The position numbers and the translations under genes are program-made. Under the pieces are notes generated by a model that saw only the letters and a program-made list of their open reading frames with translations, had not been told where the DNA came from and did not search any database. Below, one piece after another: positions 20,526-49,571 of a stretch of 64,000 bases of DNA; positions within the stretch are counted from its first letter, which is position 1; each line of letters starts with the position of its first letter. The DNA lies in NCBI RefSeq assembly GCF_964204645.1, contig NC_134030.1, positions 1,595,355 through 1,659,354 on the forward strand, in the 5' to 3' direction. The stretch is from Tubulanus polymorphus. Taxonomy: Eukaryota; Animalia; Nemertea.

Positions 20526-21008
20526 CAGCTCTTAGCCGTTGAGAAGTACTGCGTGAAAATGAGCAAAACTAGTAATCATAGCTTGACCTGGTTTCTCAAT
20601 GATGATGTCACTGGGAAAGCCTTTTGGAATAGTTGAAAGGCTTGATGTTAATACTTGATCTGGATGGGTCCGCGCCCCTTCTATAGTGTCAAAAATATAT
20701 AAATTGTGAAATTTTCCAATTTGGATGCTGTTCTTGGAAATGAAAGGATAATTTCACTCTGTTTTTATCATTTGGTTTTAACGGATAATTCTTGCTGGAA
20801 ACTACCGTCTTGTGTCTGAACACTCGATATATCGATTTCACTTGTGTGTGTGTCATTAGCATGTGTTGCTTGAAATGTGACTTTTGCTCAAACTATTGAC
20901 AGCATATTAGTTTGATTCATTATTATCACCAGTAGTCATTGCACGCTTTAATCTAACATTGCTAAGGTAATTTTAGGTAATTGCCCTCCCATTCTATCTG
21001 GTGTGCAG

Positions 21009-21163
21009 CTATCTGATAGGCCGCTGCTGAGGCGTATTAATCCGATTTTGGGGAGGGGCAGCAGCGGGCGACAAAGGTGGTGGTAATATCCTATCGGGAA
21101 CCAAGTTTCTTTTAAATTCCTCCACCAATTCCCTGAACGGACATTCGTCTAAAATGTTGATGA
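21009..21163 (-). pseudogene. Paralogue of exon 8 of the 45259-58426 gene, with a premature stop
   Basis: Acceptor tttattttacag; reads INILDECPFRELVEEFKRNLVPDRILPPPLSPAAAPPQNRINTPQQRPIR*. Confidence 0.75.
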
Positions 21164-21441
21164 CTGTAAAATAAAAATAGGGAGAAATACATTAAACAAC
21201 AAGTCGAATGGTTTTGATGCTACGGTTAAGAATTCTGGTACTCGGCGAGGTTAAACATTCATTTCTTAAACTTTACAATCGATTGTCACATTGATGGCGC
21301 CATCTATCCTTTCTAAAAACAACTATAGGATTTCAATTGCACAATGTTAATACTAGGGAACAACAGTTATTATTAGATTTTGATTATCAGTGACACACGT
21401 CACACTAAATGATATTGTATGAAAATAGTTAAACTACTTAC

Positions 21442-21510
21442 ACTTCGGTAGAAATAAACGTACAAACTCCTCCCGCCGGAACGCACGACGAATTCTAAAA
21501 GCAAGTGTTC
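21442..21510 (-). CDS. Paralogue of exon 7 (TLAFRIRRAFRREEFVRLFLPK)
   Basis: cag acceptor and gtaagt donor; several synonymous differences from 56332-56397; following intron also homologous. Confidence 0.7.
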
Positions 21511-21764
21511 CTGCTTGACAAAACTAGTTTGAATAAGAGCTGTTTGTTTTAATGAGATGAACTGAATCAATAGAATTATGTAACTGAACCTAAGTGTGTC
21601 CAGTTCCCAAATAAGGATTTGTGTTTTTCTAACCCATTTACGTAAGATATCAACAGACAGGGTTCATTCAGAGGTCAATCCTAAATGTCCCTCCCTTGAG
21701 AAGAATGACATTTCAGGTCATCAAAAGATTAAAATTCATTTAAAATCTGAATCTTTGGCTTTTC

Positions 21765-22612
21765 TATAAACAGATTGCAGATTGCATTGGCTTGAAACCT
21801 GCTTTTGGCATCTAGAAAAATAAGTAAAAATCATTTGAAAATACATTTTATAATCGAGTCCGTCAAACAGTTCAATACTTTCTTACACTTATTCTTAACA
21901 AAGTATGAATAAATTAGCATGAAAACAGTACATTTGTAATTGCAGCAGCTTAGCCGCTTGAAGTCGAAGGGTCTGCCCCCCCCCCCCCCGTGTTTTTCTC
22001 TGAGCTTTCGGCATCTAGTAAGATAACTATGATATAATGATATTAATAGAAAAATTTAAAGTAAAAGTATTGAATAAATTGAAGATACATCATATAATCG
22101 AGGCAGTCAAACAGTTCAGTACTTTCTTACAACTATTCTTAATCATGAATAAATTAGCATGGAAACAGTAAATGTGTACTTACAGTAGCATACGGGCTGG
22201 AACTTGAGGGGCCCGCGGCCCAGGTTTTTCTAATTGCTTTAGGCATTGTTGTAATGCATGGTATGAATAATTAGCATGGAAGCAGTACATTTGTAATTGC
22301 AGCAGCTTATGGGCTGGAGGTCGGGCTGGAAGTCGAAGCTTCTGCGCCCCCTGTTTTTCTCTGAGCTTTCGGCATCTAGTAAAATAAGTATGATATAATG
22401 ATATTAATAGAAAAATTTAAAGTAAAAGTATTAAATAAATTGAAGATACATCATATAATCGAGGCAGTCAAACAGTTCAGTACTTTCTTACAACTATTCT
22501 TAAGCATGGTATGAATGAATAAGCATGGAAGCAGTAAATTTGTACTTACATTAGCGTATGGGCTTGACGTACTCGGACCTGCGCCCCGGGTTTTTTTTAT
22601 GGCTTTAGGCAT
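21765..22612 (-). repeat. Five tandem exon-1-like cassettes (MPKA...; intact 63-nt copies at 22184-22246 and 22550-22612)
   Basis: MPKAIRKTWAAGPSSSSPYAT and MPKAIKKTRGAGPSTSSPYAN each followed by gtaagt; shared intron consensus. Confidence 0.8.
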
Positions 22613-22682
22613 TTTATGAAAAACAATTAAAAATATTAAATCATTTGAAAATATATCAGTCAGTCTTATTCTGGTTCAGTGA

Positions 22683-22910
22683 ACTAATTCTTTATATGGT
22701 GCATGTAGGGGTCCAGGAACACCACATCCACTAATTCTCTATATGGTGCATGTAGGGGTCCAGGGACACCACATCCACTAATTCTCTATATGGTGCATGT
22801 AGGGGTCCAGGAACACCACATCCACTAATTCTCTATATGGTGCATGTAGGGGTCCAGGGACACCATATCCACTAATTCTCTATATGGTGCATGTAGGGGT
22901 CCAGGGACAC
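22683..22910 (-). repeat. 47-bp minisatellite, ~5 copies
   Basis: ctaattctctatatggtgcatgtaggggtccagggacaccacatcca. Confidence 0.95.
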
Positions 22911-23198
22911 GTATTGTTAAAAAGAGGCAGTTTAACGTCGTACCACAGGACAAACAGATAAAAATCGCTGATAAAATGTATTGATAAAACGTATTGTTAA
23001 AAAGAGGCAGTTTAACGTCATACCACAGGACAAACAGATAAAAATCGCTGATAAAATGTATTGATAAAACGTATTGTTAAAAAGAGGCAGTTTAACGTCG
23101 TACCACAGGACAAACAGATAAAAAATCACTGATAAAATGTATGGATAAAACGTATTGTTAAAAAGAGGCAGTTTAACGTCGTACCACAGGACAAACAG
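22909..23198. repeat. 80-bp tandem repeat, ~3.6 copies
   Basis: acgtattgttaaaaagaggcagtttaacgtc at 22909, 22989, 23069, 23150. Confidence 0.95.
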
Positions 23199-23398
23199 AG
23201 TGCAATAATCAATGATTTTAATCCAAATAAGATCTTTTTAGTTGTGACTGTTTGAATTGAGAGGCGGCGATCTCGCTAGTGAGCCAAAAGACAGACACTT
23301 GAAATGAAAATAATATAAATAGTCAATTTCATTCGACATTTTTATTATGACGTTCATTAATTAAAAAATTAGCATGAAAGCAAAGAATTTATAATTAC

Positions 23399-23845
23399 AG
23401 GAGCATATGGGCTTGATGTTGAGGGACGCCCTTGTCCGCTGGGTGCCTTTTTCGTGGCTTTTGATATCTAAAAAATTAGTAATAATATTGAATAAATTGA
23501 AAATATATCATATATCGAGCCAGTCAAACAGTTCAGTACTTTCTAACAACTATTCTTAATCATGAATAAATTAGCATGGAAACAGTAAATTTGTACTAAC
23601 AGTAGGATACGGGCTTGATGTTGAGGGCCCGCACCCCACGTTTTTTTCACTGCTTTCGGCATTATCTAGAAAAATAAGTAAAACTATAAAATCATTTGAA
23701 AATACATAATATATCAGATTGTGGTAATCATGGTAATCATGGTATGAATAAATTAGCATGGACGCAGTAAATTTGTTCTAGCATCATTTGTACTGGACGT
23801 GAGGGTGCCCTCGCCCGCTGGGCGTTTTTGCAGCTTTAGGCATAT
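23399..23845 (-). repeat. Three exon-1-like cassettes (69-nt copy 23399-23467; two frameshifted or degenerate)
   Basis: ISKATKKAPSGQGRPSTSSPYAP followed by gtaatt; block duplicated at 25643-26135. Confidence 0.75.
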
Positions 23846-23984
23846 AGAAAAAGTAAAAATATTAAATCATTTGAAAATATATCTAGCCTCTCATACAGTT
23901 AAGTACTTTTAGTTGCCTTATTCTTAAGCATGATATAAATGAATTATGCTGGACGTGAGACAGAAACGGAAAGAAAACAGGCCG

Positions 23985-24265
23985 GCCCAATTCCCGGCCA
24001 CCTTCATACCGAATGTTGAGTCAAAAAGGTGCTTTGGGCTTTAAAGAATTGAAGACACCATTGTAAGCCGAAATAATTGTGGAATTGGACTAAAATTAAA
24101 TCAAAAAATATGTGGTACATGTTATAGTTGATTTTTTTTCAGTGAAGGCATATTAGGCGCACATGAACGACTCATGCGTTCAAGGCATATCCCTTCACTG
24201 AAAGAATATTTTTTAAATCAGTTAACAAATCCGGAATTGTCCCCGAACGAAGCCGCTCCTCCAAT
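23985..24265 (-). pseudogene. Fragment of the exon 9 3' end and 3'UTR
   Basis: Near-identical reverse complement of ~58350-58625. Confidence 0.8.
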
Positions 24266-24415
24266 AGGAATCTCCCAGAGGCAATTTAATTGATGGGCAC
24301 ATTTTCAAAATTTGTTTTGGTTAGCGGGACACAGAGTTATGAAAACTGGTCACAACTTTTAACTACATACAAAAAAATTGAATGCATTGAAATTGTATTT
24401 GGAGACTGAACTTAC

Positions 24416-24453
24416 TTGGTGCTTGAAAGTCGGGAGGCGTCTCCGGAGGGTTG

Positions 24454-24490
<37 letters not shown>

Positions 24491-24537
24491 TGTTGTTGTT
24501 ATTTGACAGATTAGAAACAGGCGTCTCCGGAGGGGTG

Positions 24538-24579
<42 letters not shown>

Positions 24580-24746
24580 TGTTGTTATTTGACAGATTAG
24601 AAACAGGCGTCTCCGGAGGGGTGGGCTGCTGCTGCTGCTGCTGTTGCTGCTGCTGTTGCTGTTGTTGTTATTTGACAGATTAGAAACAGGCGTCTCCGGA
24701 GGAGTGCGCTGCTGCTGCTGCTGCTGCTGTTGTTGTGATTCACCGA
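24416..24746 (-). pseudogene. Exon 6 paralogue with internal tandem expansion and (CAG/CAA)n tracts; frameshifted
   Basis: tttacag acceptor, gtaagt donor; ccggagacgcctgtttctaatctgtcaaataac repeated three times. Confidence 0.75.
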
Positions 24747-24955
24747 CTGTAAATGGAAATAATATAAAAATAAATGCAACAGAAAATGAACACAACAGGC
24801 ACTTATTACACGGTAGTTCAGTAGAATGAAGGGGTCTGGGTAGAAAAACGTGTATTCTAAGATTATCAGTATATATTTCCGTGAGGAATTTCATAAAAAC
24901 CGGCACGTACGAGGGAAGTGAGGCATGTGAGATTGAGGGCGTCACTGATACTTAC

Positions 24956-24994
24956 ATTTAGCAGCGGTGACCTTGCCTGTGAGGCAAACTGACG
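24956..24994 (-). CDS. Exon 5 paralogue (RQFASQARSPLLN)
   Basis: 39 nt, tttctag / gtaagt boundaries, homologous to 49284-49322. Confidence 0.65.
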
Positions 24995-25406
24995 CTAGAA
25001 ATGAAAATAAAAAAATACATTAGTCAAATTCATTAACGTTGCTAAGTTCAAGTTGCTGGTTTTTTAAACAATTTTAATAAGAAAAAAATATTCAGGTATA
25101 GCTAGCACTATATCAGGAACGTAGCTTGAGGCGGTTCGGGGGGTTCGAAAATTCAGTTCCTCGCAAAGAAAAATTAAAAACAGAAATGTTAAACTTACCA
25201 ATATTGAAATTTGTTCATTTAATCAAAACCTTCGTTATATCAATAGAAATCTCCCAGAGGCAATTTAATTGATGGGCACATTTTCAAAATTTGTTTTGGT
25301 TAGCGGCCCCCGACACAGAGTTATGAAAACTGGTCACAACTTTAACCGTTTTAGCTCCATACAAAAAATTGAATGCGTTGAAATTGTATTTGAAGACTGA
25401 ACTTAC

Positions 25407-25521
25407 TTCGCGCTTGGAAGTCGGGAGGCGTCTCTGGCGGAAGAGATGCGCTTCTGCTGCTGCTGTTGTTGTTATCCGAATTCAGAGGTGGCGATCGGCC
25501 TGGCGACCCAAAGTAGAGACG
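25407..25521 (-). CDS. Fused exon 5+6 paralogue (RLYFGSPGRSPPLNSDNNNSSSRSASLPPETPPDFQAR)
   Basis: 115 nt, tttctag / gtaagt, open frame, phase 0 to 1 as in the + gene. Confidence 0.7.
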
Positions 25522-25642
25522 CTAGAAATTAAAAAATAATATAAATATATTAGTCAATTTCATTAAAGTTTAAATTTTCAACATTTTTATTGTAACGTTC
25601 ATTAGTTAATAAATTAGCATGAAGCGATGAATTTGTACTCAC

Positions 25643-26135
25643 AGGTGCATATGGACTTGATGTAGAGGGACCCCCTTGTCCGCTGGGTGCCTTTTTGGTG
25701 GCTTTTGACATCTAAAAACATTAGTTATAATATATAATGATATGAAAATATATCATATATCGAGCCAGTCAAACAGTTCAGTACTTTCTAACAACTATTC
25801 TTAATCATGAATAAATTGAAAATATATCATATATCGAGCCAGTCAAACAGTTCAGTACTTTCTTACAAATATTCTTAATCATGAATAAATTAGCATGGAA
25901 ACAGTAAATTTGTACTAACAGTAGGATACGGGCTTGATGTTGAGGGCCCGCACCCCACGTTTTTTTCACTGCTTTCGGCATTATCTAGAAAAATAAGTAA
26001 AACTATAAAATCATTTGAAAATAAATTATATATCAGATTGTGGTAATCATGGTAATCCTGGTATGAATAAATTAGCATGGACGCAGTAAATTTGTACTAG
26101 CACCATCGTTTGTACTGGACGTGAGGGTGCCCTCG
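25643..26135 (-). repeat. Exon-1-like cassettes (intact 69-nt MSKATKKAPSGQGGPSTSSPYAP at 25643-25711, plus two degenerate copies)
   Basis: ttttag|atg...|gtgagt; duplicate of 23399-23845. Confidence 0.75.
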
Positions 26136-26591
26136 CTCATTGAAATTCCCTTTTGTTTACCATTTACCATGAGGTAACATTTCAGATGGAGCCACTTTGA
26201 CTATAATAAACGGTTGTAGTTCTACTGTTCACTGCTTCAGGTTTTCTATTGCAATATGTCACTATTGAACAAGAAACAAGAAATCAATCGAAGTTTGTCC
26301 GAACTGGTTTTTCAGTTTTTCTCCACTCGTCTATAACGGGCTATCAATCAATATGGTCGAATGTGCAGAATGTTCCAGCTGATAAAAACTGGGTTCCAAA
26401 ATAATCAGCCCTTTGCATGTGATGATGCGAACGATCTGCCTGGGTGCACCCTGGTATAGATTTGACGATGCAGTAATGTATGACGGACATTACCTGTCAG
26501 TAGCAGAAGCAGGGTTTAATATTCTATATATATAAATTTCGGTTTCAAGCTCAAGAATGATGACTTCAAACAGGCGTTTACGATAACTTAC

Positions 26592-26721
26592 ATCTATTCC
26601 GGACATAGAAATATTGAACCGTTGTTGTTGTTGTTGTTGTTGTTGTTCGGTTCTTTTTGCATACGGGCTCGATGTACTTGGACCCGCGCCCTGTGTTTTT
26701 TTTCATTGCTTTAGGCATAAT
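26592..26721 (-). pseudogene. Fused exon 1+2 paralogue with a +1 frameshift in an A-run
   Basis: MPKAMKK/TQGAGPSTSSPYAKRTE-polyQ-RFNISMSGID followed by gtaagt; 130 nt. Confidence 0.7.
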
Positions 26722-26849
26722 CTAGAAAAACGAGTAAAAATATTAAATCGATTTAGGCGTTAATCCTTTTTGTGAAACTGGACCCAGGGGTACAAAATAC
26801 TAAGTATGGGATGAATAAATAAGCATGGAAGCAGTAAATTTGTACTTAC

Positions 26850-26912
26850 TTTATTATACGGGCTCGATGTTGAGGGCCCCGCGCCCCGGGTTTTCTTTGT
26901 GGCTTTTGGCAT
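26850..26912 (-). CDS. Exon 1 paralogue MPKATKKTRGAGPSTSSPYNK
   Basis: ttttctag|ATG, 63 nt, gtaagt; same peptide as 45259-45321 with two synonymous changes. Confidence 0.75.
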
Positions 26913-26979
26913 CTAGAAAAACAAGTAAAAATATTAAATCATTTGAAAATATATCAGTCAGTCTTATTCTGGTTCAGTG

Positions 26980-27265
26980 AACTAATTCTTTATATGGTGC
27001 ATGTAGGGGTCCAGGGACACCACATCCACTAATTCTCTATATGGTGCATGTAGGGGTCCAGGGACACCACATCCACTAATTCTCTATATGGTGCATGTAG
27101 GGGTCCAGGAACACCACATCCACTAATTCTCTATATGGTGCATGTAGGGGTCCAGGGACACCACATCCACTAATTCTCTATATGGTGCATGTAGGGGTCC
27201 AGGGACACCACATCCACTAATTCTCTATATGGTGCATGTAGGGGTCCAGGGACACCACAACCACT
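26980..27265 (-). repeat. 47-bp minisatellite, ~6 copies
   Basis: Same unit as 22683-22910 and inverse of 44707-45190. Confidence 0.95.
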
Positions 27266-27457
27266 TAGTTGTTGGGCCCAGGCGCTTTCACCCTTCTTGC
27301 TGAAAATCAACTGATATCCTGAATTCTGACTAATTACAGATTGAAAACTGTAATTCACAAGTGCATAATCAATGATTTCAATCCAAATAAGATTTTCTTA
27401 GCTACAGTTTAAATCATCTTAGTTTAATGAAATATGAAAACAAATAAAGATTCTTAC

Positions 27458-27687
27458 CTCCGTCAGATCTCCTTCAAACACCCGCCCACGGACTCTTTCT
27501 GACCATCTTTTGGCACCCGGGGGCGGCTGTCTGACAGGCCGCTGCTGAGGCGAATTTATTGGGCGTGGGGGAGGGGCAGCAGCGGGCGACAAAGGATTAA
27601 GCGGTGGTGGTATCCTATCGGGAACCAAGTTTCTTTTAAACTCCCTCACCAAGTCCCCAAATGGGCAGTCGTCTAAAATGTTGATCA
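27458..27687 (-). CDS. Intact exon 8 paralogue, 230 nt
   Basis: Same length and splice sites as 56676-56905; INILDDCPFGDLVREFKRNLVPDRIPPP...RVRGRVFEGDLTE. Confidence 0.75.
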
Positions 27688-28411
27688 CTGTAAAATAAAA
27701 ATAGAGAGAAATACATTAAACAACAAGTCGAATGGTTTTGATGCTACGGCTATGAATATTATTCCAACAGGGGGCGCCTGATGTTACTGAAGTATGATTT
27801 CAATGTAACTTCAGTAATTGAAATTATTTTTATTCAGCAGTTAAATTGTACAATTATTCGTTATCTATGATTTCCTGATGAGATTTACTGTTTGAGCATC
27901 CAGAGATTCCAAACTTTGTCGTTTAACCAATAATTGGTTTAACGATATCACACGGCACCTGCTGAACTCTTTGTTACGTGTATCAGTCTTATATATGTAT
28001 TTATTACTTATATTTGTGTAAGGATTGTGTGACGTGACAGTGAATAATTAGCATAATTAATGCAAACTGGATTTCGTCTACGGACGGATGAAAAGTGAAC
28101 GCAATAACTATAGTCCCAAGTGAGATAAAAAAAATTAATAAGTTTGAACTTGAAATAGATATCGCTGTCGTGCTGGATTGGTGAAAAAACCTGTAAAAAT
28201 AAAATAAAACAAATTATTAGATGGATATTCATGAATGGAAATGACAACTGTAGAGATAGCATCATTGATATATTACTTCTACGATGATGATACTTAATCG
28301 AATTTGAATTTATTCCTAATTAGCGTAATTTATGCAAAACAGCTACTACCCTCTATTTTCAAATTACAAATTGAAATAAGCGTGATTTATTAGAAAAAAG
28401 TTATCACTTAC

Positions 28412-28860
28412 CGGCGTAGTAGGCGGTAAACTGGTGGCAGTGGCGGTAAACCGCTGGACGGCGTTGTCGGCAAAAACTGAAAATACAATCGAAGACAATG
28501 TTAAAATCCTGATCTGATTTGTATAGTGTAAGTGAATGGTTTTGGGGTTCGGACCGTCTGCCCACACGAGAACACCCGACCCTCGCGCTACTGCTGCATT
28601 TGACTGCTCGGTGCGTCTGAGGAGCCTTGATGGACACTTACCGGCGTAGTAGGCGATAAACCGGTGTCGAAACCCCGCTGGGCGGCGTTGTCGGCAAAAA
28701 CTGAAAATACAATCAAAGACAATGTTAAAAACCTGATCTGATTTGTATAGTGTAAGTAAATGGTTTTGGGGTTCGGACCGTCTGCCCACACGAGAACACC
28801 CTACCCTCGCGCTACTGCTGCATTTGACTGCTCGGTGCATCTGAGGAGCCTTGATGGACA
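28412..28860 (-). repeat. Tandem duplication (~225 bp) carrying two exon-3-like cassettes (28412-28476, 28642-28700)
   Basis: attttcag|tttttgccgacaacgcc...ccg|gtaagt; lengths of 65 and 59 nt are not frame-preserving. Confidence 0.75.
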
Positions 28861-29378
28861 GAACACACCATTGATGGAATAATGGTTAATCAGTCTAACC
28901 TCGTTAAAACTCTGTAAATGTGAGTTAAACTCATTGAAATTCCCTTTTGTTTACCATGAGGTAACATTTCAGATGGAGCCACTTTGACTGTAATAAACGG
29001 TTGTAGTTCTACTGTTCACTGCTTCACGTTTTCTATTGCAATATGTCACTATTGAACAAGAAACAAGAAATCAATCGAAGTTTGTCCGAACTGGTTTTTC
29101 AGTTTTTCTCCACTCGTCTATAACGGGCTATCAATCAATATGGTCGAATGTGCAGAATGTTCCAGCTGATAAAAACTGGGTTCCAAAATAATCAGCCCTT
29201 TGCATGTGATGATGCGAACGATCTGCCTGGGTGCACCCTGGTATAGATTTGACGATGCAGTAATGTATGACGGACATTACCTGTCAGTAGCAGAAGCAGG
29301 GTTTAATATTCTATATATATAAATTTCGGTTTCAAGCTCAAGAATGATGACTTCAAACAGGTGTTTACGATAACTTAC

Positions 29379-29507
29379 GTCAATTCCGGACATAGAAATA
29401 TCAAACCGCCGTTGATGTTGCTGTTGTTGTTGTTGTTGTGTTCTATTAGCGTAAGGGCTTGACGTTGAGGGGCCCGCGCCCGGGGTTTTTCTGATAGCTT
29501 TTGGCAT
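29379..29507 (-). CDS. Fused exon 1+2 paralogue, 43 aa
   Basis: MPKAIRKTPGAGPSTSSPYANRTQQQQQQQHQRRFDISMSGID followed by gtaagt, open frame. Confidence 0.7.
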
Positions 29508-29839
29508 AATTCGTAATGTGGATGGGCTTGCGTCCCATGTTTTTTGTTTGCTTTTAGCATACTTGAATGGTTAATGCTTAACATCTCTCCCAGATTGTAT
29601 TGGCTTGAAACCTTCCTTATTGGTATCTAGAAAAATATGTATAACTATTTAATCATTTGAAAATACATTTTATGATTAGTCAGTCATACAGTTCAGTACT
29701 TTCTTACACTTATTCTTAAGCATAGTATGAATAAATTAGCATGAAAAGAGTAAATTTGTAGTTACCAGCATACGGGCTGGGAGTAGAGGGGCCGGCGCCC
29801 CACATTTTTTCATGGCTTTCGGCATTGTTTTCTTTGTTT

Positions 29840-30045
29840 GTGGCAGCAACTATGGGTCGGTCTGTCTTGAGTTTGTTGGTTGTTGCAGCAGCTGGGTCAG
29901 TCTTGAGTTTGTTGGTTGTTGCAGCAGCTGGGTCAGTCTTGAGTTTGTTGGTTGTTTCAGCAGCAGCAGCTATGGGTCAGTCTTGAGTTTGTTGGTTGTT
30001 TCAGCAGCAGCAGCTATGGGTCAGTCTTGAGTTTGTTGGTTGTCT
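29840..30045. repeat. 33-40 bp minisatellite, ~5 copies
   Basis: gggtcagtcttgagtttgttggttgtt..cagcagct. Confidence 0.9.
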
Positions 30046-30505
30046 TGATTTTTTTCTTCAGGAATTCAAGAACAAAGTAGTTGCATGTAGGTAGACACAT
30101 TCATGAATCACTCAGTGTCTTCCTGTCCCACCATAACTTCCTTGATCCTCATTACTCGGATTTATTCTCTGAACCACTTTTCCATGTTTGTTGTGGTTTG
30201 TTTGTTTTGATTTGCTGGTGGTTTAAGCATGCATGTAGAGGGAGCTCTATCAATCCAGGAACAGTCAGCTCACAAGCAGCCCCTGCCCCAAAAGGTTTTG
30301 ACATATTTTCAAAAGCTCTAGTTGTTCTGTAGAACCGAGAGCGGAGCTCTGACTTGTTCCCCTTACTGCTGAGGTCTACTTTCTCTGATTCGCTGATTGG
30401 CTTCTCTTTGGTACATTTTAGATGATCAAAAACTAGAAACTGTCATGCGTTTATTCATTTTGGTATATGTTAAAATTCTTTTACAGTAAAGGCATATTAG
30501 GCACA

Positions 30506-30853
30506 TCAAAACAAACCCGGAATTGTCCCCGAACGAAGTGGCTCCCTCCACTCTCCATCAGTATGCCGGGCCACCACCTCTACCTCTCGGGCCACTCGAT
30601 CCCTCGCCAGCTTTTTAGCGAGTGAACGAGTGACCGCCCGAGATAAGGATGGAGGAGCAGGACCCGCACCTGCCCCAGCCCCATCACCATCCCTCCTCGG
30701 CCTCTTCCTATTAATTCTTACCCCTTCCTCCTGATTGCCTTGATCAGCTGCACCATCCGCAGGGGCAACTCTTGCCTCCCCTCCCTGAGGAGCCACGACG
30801 ACCGCAACTTTTCTTTTCCTTTTAGTTCTTGTTTTTTTTGGCGGTGGTCGTGT
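30506..30853 (-). CDS. Exon 9 paralogue (TRPPPKKTRTKRKRKVAVVVAPQGG...RSGTIPGLF*)
   Basis: ctctttacag acceptor; 348 nt open frame; homologous to 58034-58426. Confidence 0.7.
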   Translation of the reverse strand, partial: TRPPPKKTRTKRKRKVAVVVAPQGGEARVAPADGAADQGNQEEGVRINRKRPRRDGDGAGAGAGPAPPSLSRAVTRSLAKKLARDRVAREVEVVARHTDGEWREPLRSGTIPGLF

Positions 30854-31181
30854 CTGTAAAGAGAAAAAATGAACAATAAGTATTTAGTATAATACACCTA
30901 TGTGCGTATAATACACCTATGTGAGTCCTTCGCTATTAAACACATAGAACTGTGGAACTGGATCCCGAGGCTAATCTAAATGCGCGCAATTGAGTCCAAG
31001 TGCAACTAAAGCACACAACTGCGGATCAGATAAATCATTGGTAGATTCACTTGTAAAATATCTCGCTAAGAACAAACTAAAAACTGTAGAATGTTGTTGA
31101 AACTGTTGTGTGTTATTCATTTGGGTATATGTTATATTTGAATTTTTTTCAGTGAAGGCATATTAGGTGCACATAAACGTC

Positions 31182-31554
31182 TCATGCGTTCAAGGCATAT
31201 CCCTTCACTGAAAGAATATTCTTTAGATCAGTTAACAAATCCGGAATTGGCCCCGAACGAAGTGGCTCCCTCCACTCTCCATCAGTATGCCGGGCCACCA
31301 CCTCTACCTCTCGGGCCACTCGATCACTCGCCAGCTTTTTGACGAGTGACCGCCCGAGATACGGATGGAGGAGCAGGAGGAGCAGGACCCGCACCATCCC
31401 CAGCCCCACCACCATCCCTCCTCGGCCGCTTCCTATTTATCCCCTCCCCTTCCTCCCGATTACCTTCGTCAGCCGCACCATCCGCCGGGACCACTCTTGC
31501 TCCTCCTCCCTGCGGAGCCACGACAACCGCAACTGGTACTTTTCGGTTTCTCAT
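31182..31554 (-). pseudogene. Exon 9 paralogue with a frameshift
   Basis: Homology splits between ORFs 31324-31554 and 31182-31415 at a small deletion near SRAVTR. Confidence 0.75.
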
Positions 31555-33525: not shown

Positions 33526-36500
33526 AGTTTACTTCAGATAACGTAATTTGGTTTAATCACAAGTCGTCAACATTATAATCAATGTAACTACAGTGACTAC
33601 ATTATTGTCCTTTTATTGAGAAATTTATGTTAATTTTTGATTTCTGGGAAAAATCAAAATTCAAATGTTATCATTTTTTGTATCAAAAATTGTAAAAAAT
33701 TGAATAATTTGTGTGCTATTGAAACATTCAGTTATGGGGAGTTTTAAGCTCAGAAAACTTTGAGCCTGTTTATACAAGTGTTGTAACAAGTGTTGAACAA
33801 TTCAAAGATCATGTTTTTTATACTTTGTCATGTTAGAAAAAATGTTTTCTAGTATATTGATGTTTCTAAAAAAACATATGATTCAACTTTAAAAGGCCAA
33901 CAAGCCTTCTAATAAAACTAGTTTGTCATATATATATATATTACTTGGTCATTGTCAAGTTTTTTAAAAAATATTTTGGTTTTCTCAGCTTTCTCTGGTG
34001 GAAATTTCTTCGTGGAATTCCTCTTCTATACAAGTTCCTCCTCAGACTGTTTTTATGCGAGAGTTTATAACAACCGGATCCTCAGAAAATGGTCGGAGTG
34101 CCAAGTCTTCGATTTAAGATCACCAGTCTTATCTGAGACCATAAGTTCACTAGCAAGTTTCACTAGCGATTCCAACAGCTATAGGATGGAACAGTATTAT
34201 TATATAGGTCACCACTGTGCAATTGAGCCCAGATCATCAGAAAAAGATAAAAGTGAAGATATGTGATGGGATTCATTGAAAATTTTGCATATATAATTAA
34301 TTCATTGAACTACTTAATTTGTATGATTTATTTTTTGGGAATTTTCGAATTTGTCATCAATAACTAGTATATATTTCTTTTCAAGTTGTGAGCGATCTAG
34401 TTCTCTGTCGACCCATTGAAAATGAATCGACTCTGAACTGTAGAACTGGACCCAGGGAGCTGAATCTCGCGTGCCACAGCAAGATACAGAGCTCTTCAAT
34501 GTCTTAACCGTCAGGTGCTGCCCCTAAACAAATCAATTGCGGTAAATCTGTGAACTAACTTATAGCTCGCTTGCCAGAGTAGAATCATAGCGAGCTGTCT
34601 AAAATCTTGAACCGTCTAGTGCTGCCCCTTAATCGATATGTATCGGAAAAGTGAATTTATTACTCGCATGCCACAGTAGTTGAGTAGTTGGAACATCATG
34701 ATAGACTCGTTTTTCTGTGCAGCTATAACGGGAACTATTTCAGATCTGATAATGAATATAAACTCAGTCACAGTTCGATAACAAACGCCGCTGGGTGAAA
34801 TTGATGTAAACAAATAATCGTGTTGAAATTGAATTTAGTTTAAGATATATTTTCGTGGTAGTTTTTATTTTCAAGCTGTTTACGTTCACTTCAAATGATG
34901 AAACGATGAAACCATATTAAATACATCCCTGTTTTAGTGGGGATTTTGAGTTTTGGTCCTTTCCGTATCTTCTAGAAACATCAAGTAGAAAGGCATTAAC
35001 TGAACCCTATGTCTTTAACTTCAGGAGTCTATATGGAGTTTTCGGATGCCTCTTTTCCTCACTTCTTGCATTCGTCACTATTAGAAATCCGGACAAACTG
35101 AATTCAGTTCGACGAGGCCGAAGAACAGAAGACCAAAGAGTGATCTGCACTAGCCGCAGGGTTCGTGTTGGCTTGGATCGGTGGGAGGCAATCAAACCCC
35201 GACACGTGAAGATGTATCCTCAAAAATGGATACCGGAACGCTTCTCTGGTTTACGATGATTAGTCTGCAGGGATAACTCTTTGGCGGGGCGTGATCGCGT
35301 GAATAGCCCAAACTAAACCTTCAGAGTTCACTGTACTACAGCATACAACATCTGATAACTTGCATAATAAAGCGCGGCGTGCATGAAAAGAATTGTATAA
35401 ATGCGGGCAAGATTCCGTGCCCTGGCAATCGAACGCCGGAGTGGAGGTATTCCATACACTGGTAGGTGAGTCGGAGTAGACTGGTTGCTTGTCCCATAGA
35501 GACCGGTAACCAGTCTAGCCACCTCACGATCAGTCTACATTGAAAAACCATTACTGAAATATGGTTGACGGAAATATTCATTTTATATCAGATTCTGAAA
35601 TATTTTCTCGTATTGACTACAAAATTTTTATTATCTTAATAAGATAAATCTGCCAAAGCTCAACAATTTGAATTAGTGAAAACCGATGTGCGAAGTCGTC
35701 AATTCAGAAGCCCGATAGAGCCCGGTAACCAGTCTAACTGTCAATGTTCATTGCGCGGGAATGAACGGGCAACCAGTCTACGATGAAAAATCATTTCTGA
35801 AAAATTATGAACGGAGATATTCATTTTACTTTGAATTTTGAATTATCTTATAAAACTGACAGCCATATTAACCAAAGTATTAATAGTAAATCTGATAAAA
35901 TCTAATACCGGTTTTAGAATAGGTGAAAACTGATTTATGTGAAGCCGTCGGTTCAGAAGACTGATCCGTAGAATCGTTCGCCACTTTCTTCCGGTCCACT
36001 TACTTCCGCGTTTGTGATTTGCATACAAGTAGTTTGAATGTTAAATGTATTAAGCCGCGTGTTGATTGGTTGAGGTCAGTGCGGTTTACTGAACGATGAC
36101 CAGCTGTCAGCTGATCGAATCATTCGTTTCACAGACATTACGACGTAAGTATATTTTACATCTTTGATCAAAAATTGTAGTGTAAAAAAACTCCAAACTA
36201 AGGCCTCTATAAATGATCGATTGACTTTAAATGATTACTTTAGCACAGCTCTTGTAGACAATGATTAGGTGTCATAGTAGTTTAGCTCGAAAGTGCACAT
36301 ATAAGGTTAATTTTCATCCCTTATTTAGAGACCGAGGTATTGAGCGTCCATTTCAGCCCTTAAAACATCATCAACCTACCTCAAACTGACTGTTTTTAAA
36401 TCCAGCAATAGTTAACTATTGACTCATCATGGATTCGATTCAAAAACAATTTTTGATGATCGTAGTGAGTCGAAACGTTTGAATTTTTGAAAAACACGAA

Positions 36501-38305: not shown

Positions 38306-38445
38306 TATTTCCATCGAGTACTGTACCCTTTCCTATGGTTTTTGCCAATATTTTCTAAATTTGGATTTATCGCCAATGGTTTTTCTATACGACCCGGCCC
38401 TGCGGTATTGCATTTAGCCACCGGCGAAATCCGCCATCTTTTTTC
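38306..38445 (+). repeat. DIRS left ITR
   Basis: ~38324-38445 is the exact reverse complement of 44258-44379. Confidence 0.95.
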
Positions 38446-38648
38446 TTGGCGTTCTCGCAGTAGAACGCGTTGGATTTTTTCGCCGTAAAAATCTGGGAAT
38501 TAGGATATTAGGGAGTTTTCACTCTCGTAACGGTGAGTCCGTTCGGTTTGGGGGTTATCCCTGATTTCTTTTTTTCCGTAAGAATTTTATTTACAAATAT
38601 AATTTGATTGAATTGAATTGAATTGTTTTGATTTGTAACAGGATAATT

Positions 38649-40898
38649 ATGCCACCCCCTCCTAAGGGTCAGCATCGTGGCGGGGAGGGATGCGGGCATT
38701 TGTTTGGCGCCTGGGACAACCACGATTCATGTGCGTCGTGCAGGCGCAAATCCGGTCAAATATGTGCAAGGAGCAATCCTTGCAATATTTGCGTCGTGTG
38801 GTCCGAGGACCTTTGGCTTCGGGCCGATAAGGCTCTTAAACTAAGAGATCGTCGTCGAGTTAGCAGGGATTCGTCGGTTTCGGCCGATGTGCCAACCGAC
38901 GTTTCTAATCCTGTTTCTTATCGTAAAGCGGAGCGGTCGCCGGTCGTTCAGGTACGATCGGCTTCCCAACTCCGTTCACCGGGGAAGAACGCTGGTTCAC
39001 CGGCACCGGTCTCCGGTCATTCACCGGTCTCTGGTCGTTCACCGGTTCGGCCGGTTCGGCCGGTTCAGACTACATGTTCGGAACCGAGCGCGCGCCGCGG
39101 TAGTCGCGAACGGCCCGCACCGGTTCGGTCGGTACCGGTCCGGTCCGGGTCGGGCATCGGTCCGGTTCGGTCCGGTTCGGCCACCGGTCCGGTCCAGACG
39201 TCGTCCGGTACAAAACATCCGGTACGTTCATCGTCTGATTCTGATCGTCGCTCCGGGGATAGAGCTCGCTCTCCCACTAGATTTAGACGCCGGGAGCGTA
39301 ATAAACGAGCAAGATCTCCTTCTCGCAGATCAAGGTTTGATCGCGAGAGGGACTACGATCGTTATTGTCGGAAGTTTCGCCGTCGGTCTTCTCATCGTTC
39401 GTCGACGTCGGTTAGCGATGAAAGCGATTCTTCTAGTAGGTCACGATCCCGTTCGAGGGACCGTCACCGAAGTCGGCATGATCGTCGGGATACTGGAAAA
39501 TACCTGACTCAGAAGGATTTCCATGTATTTGAGGAGAAAATTTTAAACTTGTTATCTTCGTCGCAACAAGTCGCTGCAACTTCTACAACAGGTAAGCCTA
39601 TTCCTGATTGTCCGGTTAGAAGTTCGCCAGCCCACTCAGTTTTTCGGAATTCTGACTCTGAATTCCTGGATGCTGCGGTAGGGTCTGATTTCAATGAGGA
39701 TCCGGTCCCAGAGGCGGCAATTCCTTCTGGGGTCGTTCCTGTCGCAAGCAATTGTGGGTTGCCCCAGACGATGGGGGCTTCCCTGGCTCGCAATGTATCT
39801 CCGTCCCGTTCAGTTTTATCCGAACCAGCGGGGGACATGCCATTTAGAGCGATGATAAGTGAGTTCTTTGTCAAGCACGGGGCAACTCGCGCTAAGCCCA
39901 CAGCAGCTCCTCTGGTCGGTGAGTCAATGGAAGCTTATCGCCCTCCGGACTCCGATCTTAACGTTTTACGGGAATCGTCAGCGGTTTCAAGAGAATGGGC
40001 TCGATTGGATACGCAATTATGGGGTGAATGTCGGCCTGGAACTTTTTCATTTCCCCCTCCAGAACGGGGTATGAAATCTGGGAAATATTTTAGTTCAACC
40101 GATCCACCTATAGGCGCATTTCGCTCGGCGTATTACGCAACTCCAGGTGCTGTGGATCACAGTCATAACTGCCTGGATGCTGATTATACTTTGATCAGCC
40201 CGGATACTGTTACAGCACAGTCGGGTATTCGTTTGCCTAAGTCCGGTTTGGTGGCCATGACGTCAATCCTGGACAATCTTACCAGGGTTGGTTCGTTTCA
40301 AGATATGGCACTTAAGGTGTTGACGGGTGAGCTTCGCGAGACTCACGCCGCCGTTCATGCGGGCTCCGACCCAGAGTCAGTTGCCCTAAAACTGGAGGGA
40401 ATGGACCGGATTATCCAATCTTTGGCTCGGTCTGTTTCGCATGTAATTCCGTTGTCGGTTCGGGGTCAGGCTAATCTGGTGTTAGCCTCCCGTCAGTCAG
40501 TGATGGACTCCAGTGCCAAAACTCGTCTACCGGATATGGTGTCCAATGCTTTGCTGAGAGCCCCATTGGGGACGTCTTCACGTCTCTTCTCCGGTTGGTG
40601 CGCTCCGGTTTCCGCAGAGCTGAGGAAGATTCGGGAGGTTCAGGCCAAGTCCAACCCCCGAACTCCGTGGAAAAAGCGTTCTGGTCCGACGCCGGCGGCG
40701 CAAGGTTCGGCACGGACGCAAACAGGACCATCTCAAACTTCAGCGCTTTCTCAGGCGGCTTCGGATGCCGGTTGGAGAACTAGCGCGCAACTTCAACAAT
40801 CGTGTCAAGCCTCGTCCGGTCGTAACAGTTCCGGTTCGTATCGAGGCAAGGGGAAGGCTCCAAAAAGGGGCTCTTCCTTTCGGAAAAACTCGAAATGA
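38649..40898 (+). CDS. gag: DIRS ORF1 (gag-like), 749 aa from the first ATG
   Basis: N-terminal Cys/His cluster CGH..DNHDSCASC..C....CNIC, RS/SP-rich middle, position typical of DIRS ORF1. Confidence 0.88.
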   Translation: MPPPPKGQHRGGEGCGHLFGAWDNHDSCASCRRKSGQICARSNPCNICVVWSEDLWLRADKALKLRDRRRVSRDSSVSADVPTDVSNPVSYRKAERSPVVQVRSASQLRSPGKNAGSPAPVSGHSPVSGRSPVRPVRPVQTTCSEPSARRGSRERPAPVRSVPVRSGSGIGPVRSGSATGPVQTSSGTKHPVRSSSDSDRRSGDRARSPTRFRRRERNKRARSPSRRSRFDRERDYDRYCRKFRRRSSHRSSTSVSDESDSSSRSRSRSRDRHRSRHDRRDTGKYLTQKDFHVFEEKILNLLSSSQQVAATSTTGKPIPDCPVRSSPAHSVFRNSDSEFLDAAVGSDFNEDPVPEAAIPSGVVPVASNCGLPQTMGASLARNVSPSRSVLSEPAGDMPFRAMISEFFVKHGATRAKPTAAPLVGESMEAYRPPDSDLNVLRESSAVSREWARLDTQLWGECRPGTFSFPPPERGMKSGKYFSSTDPPIGAFRSAYYATPGAVDHSHNCLDADYTLISPDTVTAQSGIRLPKSGLVAMTSILDNLTRVGSFQDMALKVLTGELRETHAAVHAGSDPESVALKLEGMDRIIQSLARSVSHVIPLSVRGQANLVLASRQSVMDSSAKTRLPDMVSNALLRAPLGTSSRLFSGWCAPVSAELRKIREVQAKSNPRTPWKKRSGPTPAAQGSARTQTGPSQTSALSQAASDAGWRTSAQLQQSCQASSGRNSSGSYRGKGKAPKRGSSFRKNSK

Positions 40899-42936
40899 AT
40901 TCTTGGGACCAGTGGGAGGTTGTCTGCAGCAGGCAGCAACCCACTGGTCCGACCTCTTTGGAGACGGTTGGCCCTCCCGGGTCGTCTCTCGGGGCTACCG
41001 TCTCCGTTTCCTAAGGCGACCGCGCCTGATGAGGTCACCTCCCGACATGCGGCCAAAACCAGGTCAGGAGGCCTTAATCTCTCCGGCTCTCAAGGAACTG
41101 GCAGAGAAGGGAGCGATAGAACCAGTTTGCAACGAAACTTCTCCCGGCTGGTTTTCTCGAATATTCATGGTACCAAAGGCCACAGGGGGTCAACGGACAG
41201 TGATAGATCTGTCATCCCTCAATCGGCACCTAGACATTCCAAGGTTCCGGATGACCAAGCCCAAGGACGTGATTCAAGGGCTCCGTCCGGGTCAATGGGC
41301 GGCTTCATTGGACCTGAAAGATGCTTACTTTCAGGTTCCAATTCACCCAAAATCTCGGCGATTTCTCAGGATAAAGTGGAAAGGCCGCCAGTTCCAATTC
41401 AGGTCTCTTCCATTTGGCCTCAGTACGGCCCCGTGGGTTTTCACCAAGTTGGTCAAGTCAGTTCAGAAGGTACTTCAGTCAAGGGGTGTTCGACTGTTCG
41501 TTTACCTCGACGACTGGTTAATAGTCGCGAATTCGGCTCAGGAATGTCGGGAGGCAATGACCTCAGTCTTGGACTTAGTCCATCAGCTAGGGTTCCGCGT
41601 AAACAGGGAAAAATCTCAGTTGACGCCGGCCCAACAGTTCACTTATCTCGGCATGGACTTCGATCTCCGAATCGGCAAAGTCTTTCCGTCTATGGTTCGA
41701 GTGGCCAAACTTCAAGAAGCTGTAGCGGGAGTGTCCACAACCCCGAGAACAGCTCGTTACTGGTCACGGCTTCTAGGCTCCATCAGCTCCATGGGTCTGG
41801 TGGTGCCCTTAGGCCGCCTCAGAAGCAGGCGCTTGCAACAATATTGGAAGGTCTTCTGGTCTCAGTCGAAGGGCAACTGGGAGGCCTTGATTCCCGTACC
41901 TCCAACCGATCTAAGTCCGGATCTTCAGTGGTGGGCGGCCACTACGAATCTTCGGCTCGGGGTGTCACTAGCCCCGTTAGAGGCTCCAGTTCGTGTATTC
42001 ACGGATGCCAGTCACCAAGGTTGGGGGGCACATCTGGAGAACCGAGTCAAAGCCGGGAAATGGTCTCGCTACGAGGCCACCAACCACATAAATTTCCTAG
42101 AAATGCTGGCCGTGTGGAAGGCCCTGAAGTTCTTTCACAGGAGAGTGGAGGGCCACCACGTTTGGTTAGCCACAGACAATTCAACAGTGAGGGCTTACCT
42201 TCAGAACCAAGGGGGCACTCACTCAGAAACCCTCACAGGTCTGTCGGCCAAAATTCTTCTTTGGTGTCAGACAAAGGGCGTGTCCCTGACTGTGGCACAT
42301 TTAGCAGGGAAAAGGAACGTGATGGCCGATGCTCTGTCTCGTCGAGGTCAGGCTATTGCGACAGAATGGGTTCTCCACCAAGAAGTAGCCGATCGGGTTC
42401 GGGGCATTTTTGGCAATCCGCTGCTGGATCTGTTTGCCACCCGGTTCAATCGGAGGTGTCCTCTGTTTGTGTCCCCGTTTCCAGACGCGGAAGCGTGGGG
42501 GGTCGATGCCTTCTCTCTGGACTGGTCGGGGATGCATGCGTATGCGTTCCCGCCCACACCAGTCCTGCCGCGCTTACTGGATCAAATAGAGAGATCAGTC
42601 AATTGCAACATAGTTCTGGTAGCACCATGTTGGCCGGCTCAGAAATGGTTCCTACCACTTCTCAACCTACTGTGCGACAACCCCAGGATTCTTCCGAATT
42701 TCCCATCGCTTCTGTCTCAGGGGATCTTTCGGCATCATCCAAACAGCCAGTGGTTAAATCTGCTCGCCTGGCCATTGTCCAGCGATCCTTGTCAGCTTCA
42801 GGCTTTTCAGAACAGGCTGCCTCCTTTATCGCAGGATCTAAGCGGCCATCAACAAGTACCATTTACGATGCCAAGTGGAGTCATTTTGCGGATTGGTGTG
42901 CTGCAGGGGAAATTGATCCATGCTCACCCTCTGTAG
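40765..42936 (+). CDS. pol: DIRS ORF2: reverse transcriptase, RNase H and C-terminal adenine-methyltransferase-like domain
   Basis: LDLKDAYF, LPFGL, YLDD; FTDAS..GWG, INFLEM, TDN, ADALSR; DLFA...DAF...AYAFPP. Confidence 0.96.
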   Translation: MPVGELARNFNNRVKPRPVVTVPVRIEARGRLQKGALPFGKTRNEFLGPVGGCLQQAATHWSDLFGDGWPSRVVSRGYRLRFLRRPRLMRSPPDMRPKPGQEALISPALKELAEKGAIEPVCNETSPGWFSRIFMVPKATGGQRTVIDLSSLNRHLDIPRFRMTKPKDVIQGLRPGQWAASLDLKDAYFQVPIHPKSRRFLRIKWKGRQFQFRSLPFGLSTAPWVFTKLVKSVQKVLQSRGVRLFVYLDDWLIVANSAQECREAMTSVLDLVHQLGFRVNREKSQLTPAQQFTYLGMDFDLRIGKVFPSMVRVAKLQEAVAGVSTTPRTARYWSRLLGSISSMGLVVPLGRLRSRRLQQYWKVFWSQSKGNWEALIPVPPTDLSPDLQWWAATTNLRLGVSLAPLEAPVRVFTDASHQGWGAHLENRVKAGKWSRYEATNHINFLEMLAVWKALKFFHRRVEGHHVWLATDNSTVRAYLQNQGGTHSETLTGLSAKILLWCQTKGVSLTVAHLAGKRNVMADALSRRGQAIATEWVLHQEVADRVRGIFGNPLLDLFATRFNRRCPLFVSPFPDAEAWGVDAFSLDWSGMHAYAFPPTPVLPRLLDQIERSVNCNIVLVAPCWPAQKWFLPLLNLLCDNPRILPNFPSLLSQGIFRHHPNSQWLNLLAWPLSSDPCQLQAFQNRLPPLSQDLSGHQQVPFTMPSGVILRIGVLQGKLIHAHPL

Positions 42937-43847: not shown

Positions 43848-44106
43848 AATATTTATGTAGCATTATCAGGATCACAGGGGGTGTATCCTTGTACATAGTT
43901 TGGGCTCATATCTGCAAGTATTAATTTCGCAAAATTCTGGGGGGGGCCCCTGAGCTGGACGGACTCACTGTGGCCAACCGGTCTTCCCTGTGCTACAGTG
44001 CTCCATTCCGTGCTTGGGTAAGTGCTCTCTTTTTCCCTCTTACCTTGCGTTTGAGCGGTGGTTTTTCTATCTACCTTTCCCACCATCCTTGTGCTAGGCT
44101 AGTCTA

Positions 44107-44204
44107 GCAAAAACCATAGGAAAGGGTACAGTACTCGATGGAAATATTACAATTTTTGGAACTAAAATTTGTATTTCCGAGTAGTACTTACCCTTTCCTA
44201 TGGT
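44107..44204 (+). other. DIRS internal complementary region (ICR)
   Basis: First half complements the element 5' end (tatttccatcgagtactg), second half complements the 3' extension (..ttccaaaaattgtaa). Confidence 0.95.
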
Positions 44205-44257
44205 GGGAATCCCGCCCACCTGCCCCGCATAGCTGTTTTTTTTTGGTCTGCTATGAC

Positions 44258-44655: not shown

Positions 44656-44706
44656 TTTGTCAATCATCATATCAAGATTTGCAATCCCAGTTGCCTTCAA
44701 GTTTCA

Positions 44707-49540: not shown

Positions 49541-49571
<31 letters not shown>

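Follow-up and report, generated by a model that had tools for sequence, protein, structure and literature searches.

An orphan gene and its surroundings

The window analysed here comprises 64,000 nucleotides of the Tubulanus polymorphus genome (contig NC_134030.1, called C6 below) and carries on its + strand an intact, nine-exon orphan gene (45259..58426), whose coding exons are each bounded by AG and GT and join into a single open frame of 344 amino acids. These exons are E1 (45259-45321), E2 (46480-46569), E3 (46979-47023), E4 (47394-47420), E5 (49284-49322), E6 (49533-49614), E7 (56332-56397), E8 (56676-56905) and E9 (58034-58426), all on the + strand. E1 to E5 are phase-0. Exons no longer than 81 nt account for 23% of the coding sequence and those up to 90 nt for 40%, and intron 6 contains a decayed DIRS-like relic. 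From a CCAAT-like box, an initiator-like site and a donor at about 36146, we infer a promoter and non-coding first exon at 36040..36146 (+ strand); this putative element occurs once per gene and is 85-89% conserved in older paralogs. Between it and E1 lie a seemingly intact DIRS-type retrotransposon (with gag-like, RT/RNase H and tyrosine recombinase regions; 38310..44420, + strand), inserted in a 19-bp satellite and private to the window's unit, and a 47-bp satellite directly upstream of E1 (44705..45190, + strand).

The predicted protein is of low complexity (rich in P, R, S, A and Q), has basic NLS-like runs and begins with a basic rather than hydrophobic N-terminus. No signal peptide was found by a hydropathy proxy, rather than SignalP (maximum hydropathy -0.9 over the N-terminal 40 amino acids), and the protein looks nuclear rather than surface-bound or secreted. 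Protein-level searches were run exon by exon. Pfam gave no real match to single exons, E8 had one junk match only among 1.84 billion representatives, E9 and the C-terminal part of a C11 paralog had no homolog within the length window of the search, and the ESM Atlas returned no result. A model of the E9 C-terminus was weak (pLDDT 69, pTM 0.39) and had no PDB match; a search for RdRP was blank, as were its controls. We rejected a toxin identity, given a single Cys and no signal peptide, and a viral origin, given eight spliceosomal introns and no viral match. The recently amplified, lineage-restricted and satellite-flanked family comprises about 33 intact gene copies, plus about 10 distant ones, and is apparently unannotated in the reference genome; cassette blocks number about 11.

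An inverted block of exon cassettes

Head-to-head with this gene stands a 10.5-kb minus-strand block (21005..31549) of about 33 segments homologous to it. Mapping the cassettes by BLAST of each exon and its flanks against the window reproduced the order that an earlier note on this DNA had read along the minus strand from 31549 to 21005, and added two features: a short piece of E1 near 29620-29668, and a sequence repeated three times inside an E6 cassette. Read in that direction, the block begins with two E9 cassettes (30471..31549), one 5'-truncated and frameshifted and the other with an acceptor and an early stop. There follows a module of E1, E1+2, E3, E3, E4 and E8 (27458..29825), in which the E1+2 cassette (29379-29507) has precisely lost intron 1 with its frame kept and E8 is intact (27458-27687); it belongs to a 2.7-kb module, present three times over in another unit, and its 2668-bp back-joint is present in reads. 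The next module (23945..27265) consists of 47-bp satellite, E1, E1+2, E1x3, E5+6, E5, E6 and the end of E9 with 3' flank. Its E1 is nearly identical to that of the gene, its E1+2 has a 1-nt frameshift, its E5+6 cassette (25407-25521) has precisely lost intron 5, and its E6 carries the triple repeat. Beyond it, E1x3 and an E5-like cassette (23256..23883) are old and unchanged between block copies, and the block ends with 80-bp and 47-bp satellites, E1x5, a partial E7 and a truncated E8 (21005..23199). Within the block, as at the gene, the 47-bp satellite precedes E1 cassettes.

The earlier note had called this arrangement scrambled and not colinear with the gene. Its listing stands, but the order is far from random: exon numbers ascend and then reset, with 6 descents where 11.4 would be expected (p=2e-4); five of the six go back to E1. 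As most of the ascending runs start over at exon 1, the block is less scrambled than it appears, and its order identifies it, on homology, as a series of tandem, head-to-tail, internally deleted gene copies. Exons make up 41% of the block against 14% expected; 96% of the coding sequence is represented, and intron sequence little. Among 25 near-complete cassettes, the acceptor AG is retained in 19, the donor GT in 17 and both in 13. Only seven of the 25 combine both splice sites with an open, phase-keeping frame. In the window's block no promoter copy can be recognised; one C8 block has such a copy, oriented in the sense direction, and in four other blocks part of the non-coding first exon forms an acceptor- and donor-bounded cassette.

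Gene and block recur as one unit

The block's E1 array is found at 95-100% in seven places on C6 and partly in two on C3, and a second block copy (C6:1.035-1.053 Mb) has the same cassette order. Raw reads from another animal cover 30/30 bins of 25560-31555, and block-specific bins in these reads correspond to 6-9 copies per haploid genome. The sequence comparisons show that the block was amplified jointly with the gene as one unit. Mis-assembly, a concern raised in the earlier note and a natural one in so repetitive a region, is contradicted by the recurrence of one order in several diverged copies and by the independent animal's coverage, and we give it practically no weight. The same note had missed the block's membership in a many-times amplified unit. 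Units vary in content: the short ones are down to two cassettes, and several C3 genes lack cassettes altogether. In a 45%-identical subfamily on C9/C11, too, inverted partial copies are found at about 7 kb from the genes.

Two presumed RNA runs yielded no contig. A further run, X5, was rejected as expression evidence, being DNA-like in covering intron 2 and the satellites as deeply as the exons; its E8 piece has gene-type alleles.

Genes and cassettes exchange short patches

E1 has the most cassette copies of any exon and also varies the most. Across genes and cassettes it has 25 variable sites in 57 bp, with Rm=7 and 73 four-gamete pairs; its diversity is 0.168 among genes, 0.161 among cassettes and 0.170 between them, and 30 of 38 gene alleles are shared with cassettes. 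By these measures, the E1 copies of genes and cassettes form one mosaic pool with at least seven recombination points in 57 bp. In some cassettes the current gene version has replaced the sequence of whole exons, and a flow from gene to cassette is evident. Cassettes with gene-like flanks differ between block copies (9.4% versus 0.9%, rho=-0.79), and old cassettes are frozen. Exchange through short conversion patches is well supported by such patterns, recurrent mutation being a residual alternative. In this respect the earlier suggestion of a cassette reservoir with gene conversion is upheld by the shared pool, the four-gamete pairs and the overwritten exons.

The exchanged differences are mostly silent. 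Amino-acid variants recur at E1 positions 5, 11 and 15 and in patches of E3, E7 and E8. The E1+2 and E5+6 junctions agree with an older C8 paralog in every codon, and no intact gene with cassette-type E8 or E1+2 sequence, a possible donor, was found.

Silent exon sites diverge more than introns

The earlier note would have been refuted by neutral decay of exons at the rate of their flanking introns, but the exons diverge faster. Between cassettes and gene, 186 of 1804 exon positions differ (10.3%) versus 113 of 2783 intron positions (4.1%; p=2e-16), with pS 0.185 and pN 0.075. CpG decay was rejected as the cause of this excess, which persists at non-CpG positions (8.9% versus 3.3%), as was GC content, since a GC-matched neutral relic differs by merely 0.7-1.8%.

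Intact genes behave similarly, an exon-limited silent variation that the first reading had also overlooked. Our full-gene comparisons covered seven genes and two block copies. Over E1-E6, four pairs of intact C6 paralogs differ at 15-20% of silent sites versus 0.7-1.1% of intron sites, and a C8 copy at 39% versus 3.3%; one further C6 pair has identical exons. In most intact pairs silent sites exceed introns 12- to 25-fold, with the protein conserved (pN/pS about 0.1-0.4 across comparisons, about 0.4 for cassette versus gene). Non-silent divergence (2-7%) is also slightly above that of introns, significantly in 2/6 pairs (p=0.01-0.02), so protein-level selection is possible. Divergence falls stepwise at splice sites, the changes reaching the exon edges and then stopping. 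Transitions account for 49% of exon and 54% of intron changes, with no editing-like mutation bias. Among C6 genes, E4, E6 and E9 are not hypervariable.

Possible explanations

Together, these comparisons show that the block arose as an inverted duplicate, head-to-head, of an orphan gene with many copies, and collapsed to tandem, internally deleted copies that keep exons and short intron arms. Where the arms of a cassette still match those of the gene, short patches of exon sequence are shared, and very probably exchanged, with intact genes. Silent sites usually vary in step with introns; that silent exon letters here vary far more suggests a chase at the level of mRNA sequence, in which selection may act on the letters of the mature mRNA. 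Genetic-conflict theory naturally predicts silent recoding as an escape from small-RNA silencing, and we tentatively favor such silencing and escape here, as a reading with a substantial chance of being right that falls short of probable. The block would be a germline source of small RNAs (piRNA-cluster-like or double-stranded RNA) aimed at the gene family; genes would escape by silent recoding, partly by borrowing protein-compatible patches from old cassettes; cassettes would be updated from current genes, and concerted evolution would hold introns uniform. Such a scheme resembles a selfish gene and its suppressor. For it speak the excess of silent over intron divergence with its step at splice sites, the shared E1 pool, the exon enrichment of the block, the concentration of both cassette copies and variation in E1, and the inverted copies near the C9/C11 genes. 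Against it speak the negative RNA runs, the block in the window without a promoter copy, E4, E6 and E9, which are not hypervariable, and the non-silent divergence above that of introns; silencing also needs neither kept splice sites nor precise intron losses. In a more elaborate form, which we think possible but rather doubtful, an exon archive with intron homology arms would both guide small-RNA silencing and supply synonymous patches for mRNA recoding; if so, sequence variation would target RNA recognition, not protein.

The precise, in-frame intron losses of E1+2 and E5+6, with genomic flanks retained, instead invite a model in which spliced RNA from gene or block is copied back into DNA by reverse transcription and replaces exons alone, bringing in old variants already filtered at the protein level, without any need for silencing. 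Junctions codon-identical to the older C8 paralog, changes that extend to exon edges and no further, the bounded first-exon cassettes of four other blocks and the presence of DIRS-type reverse transcriptase genes all agree with it. However, conversion by cDNA would be expected to make exons uniform and mostly to delete introns, no intact donor gene was found for cassette-type E8 or E1+2, the changes show no editing-like bias and no transcript was seen in the runs examined; we judge RNA templating unlikely. Equally unlikely, in our estimate, is diversification from donor cassettes under protein-level selection, as in vls or MHC, whereby old exon alleles are kept for their protein variants while silent sites hitchhike and introns are homogenised. 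An expressed-type gene head-to-head with silent cassettes (arms conserved, cores about 85-95% identical), the recurrent amino-acid variants and the two pairs with excess non-silent divergence speak for it, but pN is far below pS, gene-to-cassette flow is evident and the protein looks neither surface-bound nor secreted. Moreover, silent sites recombine within 20 bp, so hitchhiking should break.

The earlier note had also offered a decaying duplication hotspot. On this view the inverted duplicate has no function, lies in a satellite-rich array near a chromosome end, is reshuffled by unequal exchange and is simply carried along. Mostly broken cassettes, common satellites and local tandem duplications, units with two cassettes or none, and old cassettes frozen between block copies fit this picture, but it predicts introns diverging at least as much as exons and no exon enrichment, the opposite of what we observe. 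With pN/pS near 0.4 and the inverted arrangement recurring in a distant subfamily, it seems decidedly improbable. The note's other proposal, mosaic proteins made by splicing in the manner of micro-exon genes (MEGs) or Sp185/333, is not supported, given the few splice- and frame-intact cassettes, no signal peptide, no RNA in the runs examined and the mostly silent exchange. The reading of the block as a micro-exon gene in its own right, alternatively spliced, could draw on the 13 cassettes with both splice sites, the phase-0 exons E1-E5 and some open cassettes; with 7/25 splice- and frame-intact, truncated terminal cassettes and no promoter copy, RNA or signal peptide, we regard it as very improbable.

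To our knowledge, there is no clear animal case of escape from small-RNA silencing through silent recoding, and a literature search for this exact pattern found nothing. The locus makes such escape testable; should RNA-templated exon rewriting be the cause instead, that would be likewise unusual.

Comparison with known systems

Exons more divergent than introns are familiar from MHC class I families, where introns are homogenised, and from snake and cone-snail venom genes, where exon evolution is accelerated. In those secreted or surface proteins the excess is in amino-acid changes, whereas in the worm family silent changes dominate.

The worm family is a member of neither the MEGs nor Sp185/333. 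It shares with schistosome MEGs several short phase-0 exons and lineage specificity (PMC4350168, PMC10526429), but exons of at most 81 nt contribute only 23% of its coding sequence, it has no signal peptide and its variants lie between copies. Like Sp185/333 (SpTransformer), it has tens of clustered genes, nearby repeats, gene conversion and mosaic sequence (PMC5491942, PMC3091723); unlike it, it has nine exons rather than two, no leader, mosaicism between copies with no element mosaic inside one exon, and a separate inverted cassette block.

The Dox family of Drosophila simulans, with its Nmy/Tmy hairpin suppressors (bioRxiv 10.1101/2021.08.05.454923; PMC10292708), is likewise recently amplified, satellite-flanked and lineage-restricted, with derived inverted copies that could yield silencing RNAs. 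In the worm, however, the derived copies are linked within each unit and are exon cassettes, not a perfect hairpin, and the protein has no protamine/HMG domain.

In Borrelia vlsE, an intact gene stands head-to-head with silent cassettes, about 90% identical, that form one contiguous array; exchange is segmental, and arrays evolve through duplication and rearrangement (PMC11499132). The worm locus differs in being an animal gene with introns whose cassettes are single exons with intron arms, in having about 33 intact genes in place of a single expression site, in a flow at least partly from gene to cassette rather than unidirectional into the expression site, and in variation that is mostly silent (pN/pS about 0.1-0.4) in a nuclear-looking protein, not a surface antigen. 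Yet here too the cassettes form a contiguous array, head-to-head with an intact gene, and the four-gamete pairs, shared alleles and overwritten cassettes point to the same kind of segmental exchange between the two.

The gene and its family

The plus-strand gene (window 45259-58426) has nine exons, each bounded by AG and GT, whose joined sequence is a single open frame 344 amino acids long. P, R, S, A and Q are abundant in its protein, which has one Cys and basic NLS-like runs and lacks a hydrophobic N-terminus; exon-by-exon queries and searches with Pfam, HMMER, ESM Atlas and a fold search, all of which have blind spots, found no relative of any exon outside the Tubulanus polymorphus assembly (G000; 268 Mb, 77 contigs). 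The window is C6:1595355-1659354 of this assembly, to which a 416-aa protein listed by NCBI under that species matches at 100% along its entire length. Full, stop-free copies of E9 number 34 in the assembly: 18 on contig C6, 10 on C3 and 6 on C8, where one lies inside a block. Upstream, in the gene's orientation, a 111-bp element (window 36040-36150) that we read as a putative promoter and non-coding first exon occurs once before each gene and is 85-89% kept in older paralogs. Around the acceptor next to the start codon (window 45256-45261, and likewise in paralogs), the intron sequence does not vary, unlike the few bases that separate the AG from the start codon: some copies have none there, and the others have one of three triplets.

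A subfamily at 45-51% amino-acid identity, with a similar exon layout, has about ten copies on C9, C11 and C8. Its exons are short and phase-matched (for example, G000:C11:2080501-2085700), its last exon carries an acidic PE-repeat, a C-terminal segment of 55 aa is conserved, and an inverted piece of E8 lies ~7 kb downstream in most copies. Weak E8-like matches (E 0.02-0.07) spaced about 5.6 and 11.3 kb apart at G000:C12:3299246-3340636 could represent another distant tandem family, or else noise from proline-rich sequence.

Organization of the inverted block

BLAST of the exons against the window confirmed the order of minus-strand cassettes (window 21005-31549) that an earlier note had read from the sequence alone. 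The order is not random, as its word 'scrambled' had implied: it has six descents where 11.4 would be expected (p=2e-4), and five of these go back to E1; the block reads as tandem, internally deleted gene copies with local E1 expansion. Exon sequence is present in 30 of the 33 segments homologous to the gene and makes up 41% of the homologous bases, versus 14% in the gene (p<1e-5, although the segments are not independent of one another); the block covers 96% of the coding sequence and lacks the interiors of long introns. In the E1+2 and E5+6 cassettes two exons are fused by precise, in-frame loss of the intron, and the codons at the junctions agree with those of an older C8 paralog. Among 25 near-complete cassettes, 19 keep the AG, 17 the GT and 13 both; seven combine both splice sites with an open, in-phase frame.

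Because no gene of the same array precedes the first block and no block follows the last gene, the repeating unit is a block and a gene head-to-head. The same geometry is found on C8, where a second kind of block (G000:C8:15154001 to about 15172300) faces the gene at C8:15.135-15.150 Mb; this block holds a promoter-like copy, then a 2.69-kb tandem repeat containing E9, E1, an E5 flank and an E9 fragment. The E1 array recurs at 95-100% in seven places on C6 and in part at two on C3, and short 33-kb units retain only inverted E9 and inverted satellite plus E1. Mis-assembly, a concern of the earlier note, was not borne out: a second block (C6:1.035-1.053 Mb) has the same cassette order, with one 2.7-kb module triplicated, and raw reads from another animal cover the block stretch (window 25560-31555), with block-specific bins at 6-9 copies per haploid genome and E8 at ~32. 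The 2668-bp module duplication is seen in those reads too.

Part of the putative non-coding first exon (C6:about 1050970-1051030), preceded by the intron-1 acceptor and followed by a donor, occurs in four blocks and is missing from the window's. Just beyond the window's block lies a minus-strand ORF of 182 aa (window 19977-20760) with no Pfam match, preceded by a short, faintly E1-like stretch; the region around it has 51 differences in 4243 bases between two units. One repeat unit holds at least eight different satellites (19, 24, 35, 47, 53, 63, 91 and 267 bp), several differing in length between units; in the window, satellites occupy 6367-9316, 32489-33524, 36764-38310, 55509-55845, 59694-60372 and 62800-64000. 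An apparently intact DIRS-type retrotransposon (window 38310-44420; three long overlapping ORFs, inverted ends) has inserted into the 19-bp satellite in this unit and no other; every examined unit has a decayed relative in its intron 6.

Exons diverge more than introns

Divergence was counted by uncorrected Nei-Gojobori on pairwise alignments, comparing exons with introns within this gene family; sequence-level tests covered ~290 kb of genome, with seven genes for E1-E6, 20 for E8-E9 and two long blocks. Between cassettes and the gene, exon sites differ by 10.3% and introns by 4.1% (p=2e-16; 8.9% versus 3.3% without CpG), not the equal rate of decay that the earlier note had considered, and pS is 0.185 against a pN of 0.075. 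One E2 cassette has ten differences in 66 exon bases and one in 311 adjoining intron bases. Intact genes behave likewise: over E1-E6, silent divergence is 15-20% versus 0.7-1.1% in introns for four C6 pairs, with exons identical in a fifth; for a C8 copy the two values are 39% and 3.3%. Non-silent sites diverge by 2-7%. Divergence drops at splice sites, and in intron 6 a retrotransposon relic of matched GC content shows just 0.7-1.8% difference. Among C6 genes, E1 (diversity 0.127) and E3 (0.082) show a strong exon excess and E7 and E8 a patchy one, while E4, E6 and E9 show none. A much older C8 paralog is normal, with silent sites about equal to introns, so the exon signal belongs to the homogenised group.

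Exchange between genes and cassettes

In 57 bp of E1, 25 sites vary among sixteen versions, five from genes and 11 from cassettes, and diversity is the same among genes, among cassettes and between the two groups. The pool contains 73 four-gamete pairs and a minimum of seven recombination points, counts that may be inflated if saturated silent sites have mutated repeatedly. For E8 and its flanks in 20 gene copies, both alleles are found in cassettes at nine of 16 polymorphic sites. Two block copies differ by 4.8% in exons versus 1.2% in spacers (p=9e-34), and the change is concentrated in cassettes with gene-matching flanks (9.4% versus 0.9%; rho=-0.79), as homology-dependent conversion predicts. 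The allele now found in some cassettes is that of the current gene. Gene conversion involving cassettes, suggested by the earlier note, holds up on patchwise sharing, four-gamete pairs and current alleles, and flow from cassette to gene is plausible.

Possible explanations

The locus has undergone inverted duplication, collapse to exon-centred cassettes and co-amplification with the gene, and it combines patchwise sharing with genes, exon-limited silent divergence and protein conservation. Selection may act on the letters of the mRNA: small RNAs derived from the block would target a germline gene family, whose members would escape by silent recoding. Such a chase is the simplest account, offered tentatively as somewhat short of probable. 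Two presumed RNA runs yielded no contig at 88% likeness, a cut-off that the gene's E8 and E9 would pass. Transcripts can be missing from contig sets, and the runs may lack gonad or embryo samples. A third run behaves as low-coverage DNA.

Precise in-frame intron loss usually points to recombination with cDNA, and the fused cassettes bring to mind cDNA-templated rewriting of exons, which we nevertheless consider unlikely. Equally doubtful is protein-level diversification from donor cassettes with introns homogenised, a reading to be set beside both the non-silent differences and the larger silent ones. Neutral decay, with many splice sites lost but exons outpacing introns, is improbable; a spliced mosaic gene, with only seven cassettes keeping sites and frame, is very improbable, and mis-assembly scarcely credible given the recurrence and independent reads.

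Comparison with known systems

The gene is a member of neither the schistosome MEG (PMC4350168) nor the Sp185/333 (PMC5491942) family, to which the earlier note had likened it, because exon layout and signal peptide both fail to match. Its population behaviour is similar to that of the Dox family and its hairpin suppressors (bioRxiv 10.1101/2021.08.05.454923), whose defining feature, small RNAs, is putative in the worm. In layout it is like the Borrelia vls locus, where a gene and silent cassettes also lie head-to-head (PMC11499132), but it differs in having no single expression site, one-way flow or antigenic amino-acid variation. The locus is real, structured and unusual, of the gene-plus-silent-cassette type, and its exons carry an excess of silent changes.
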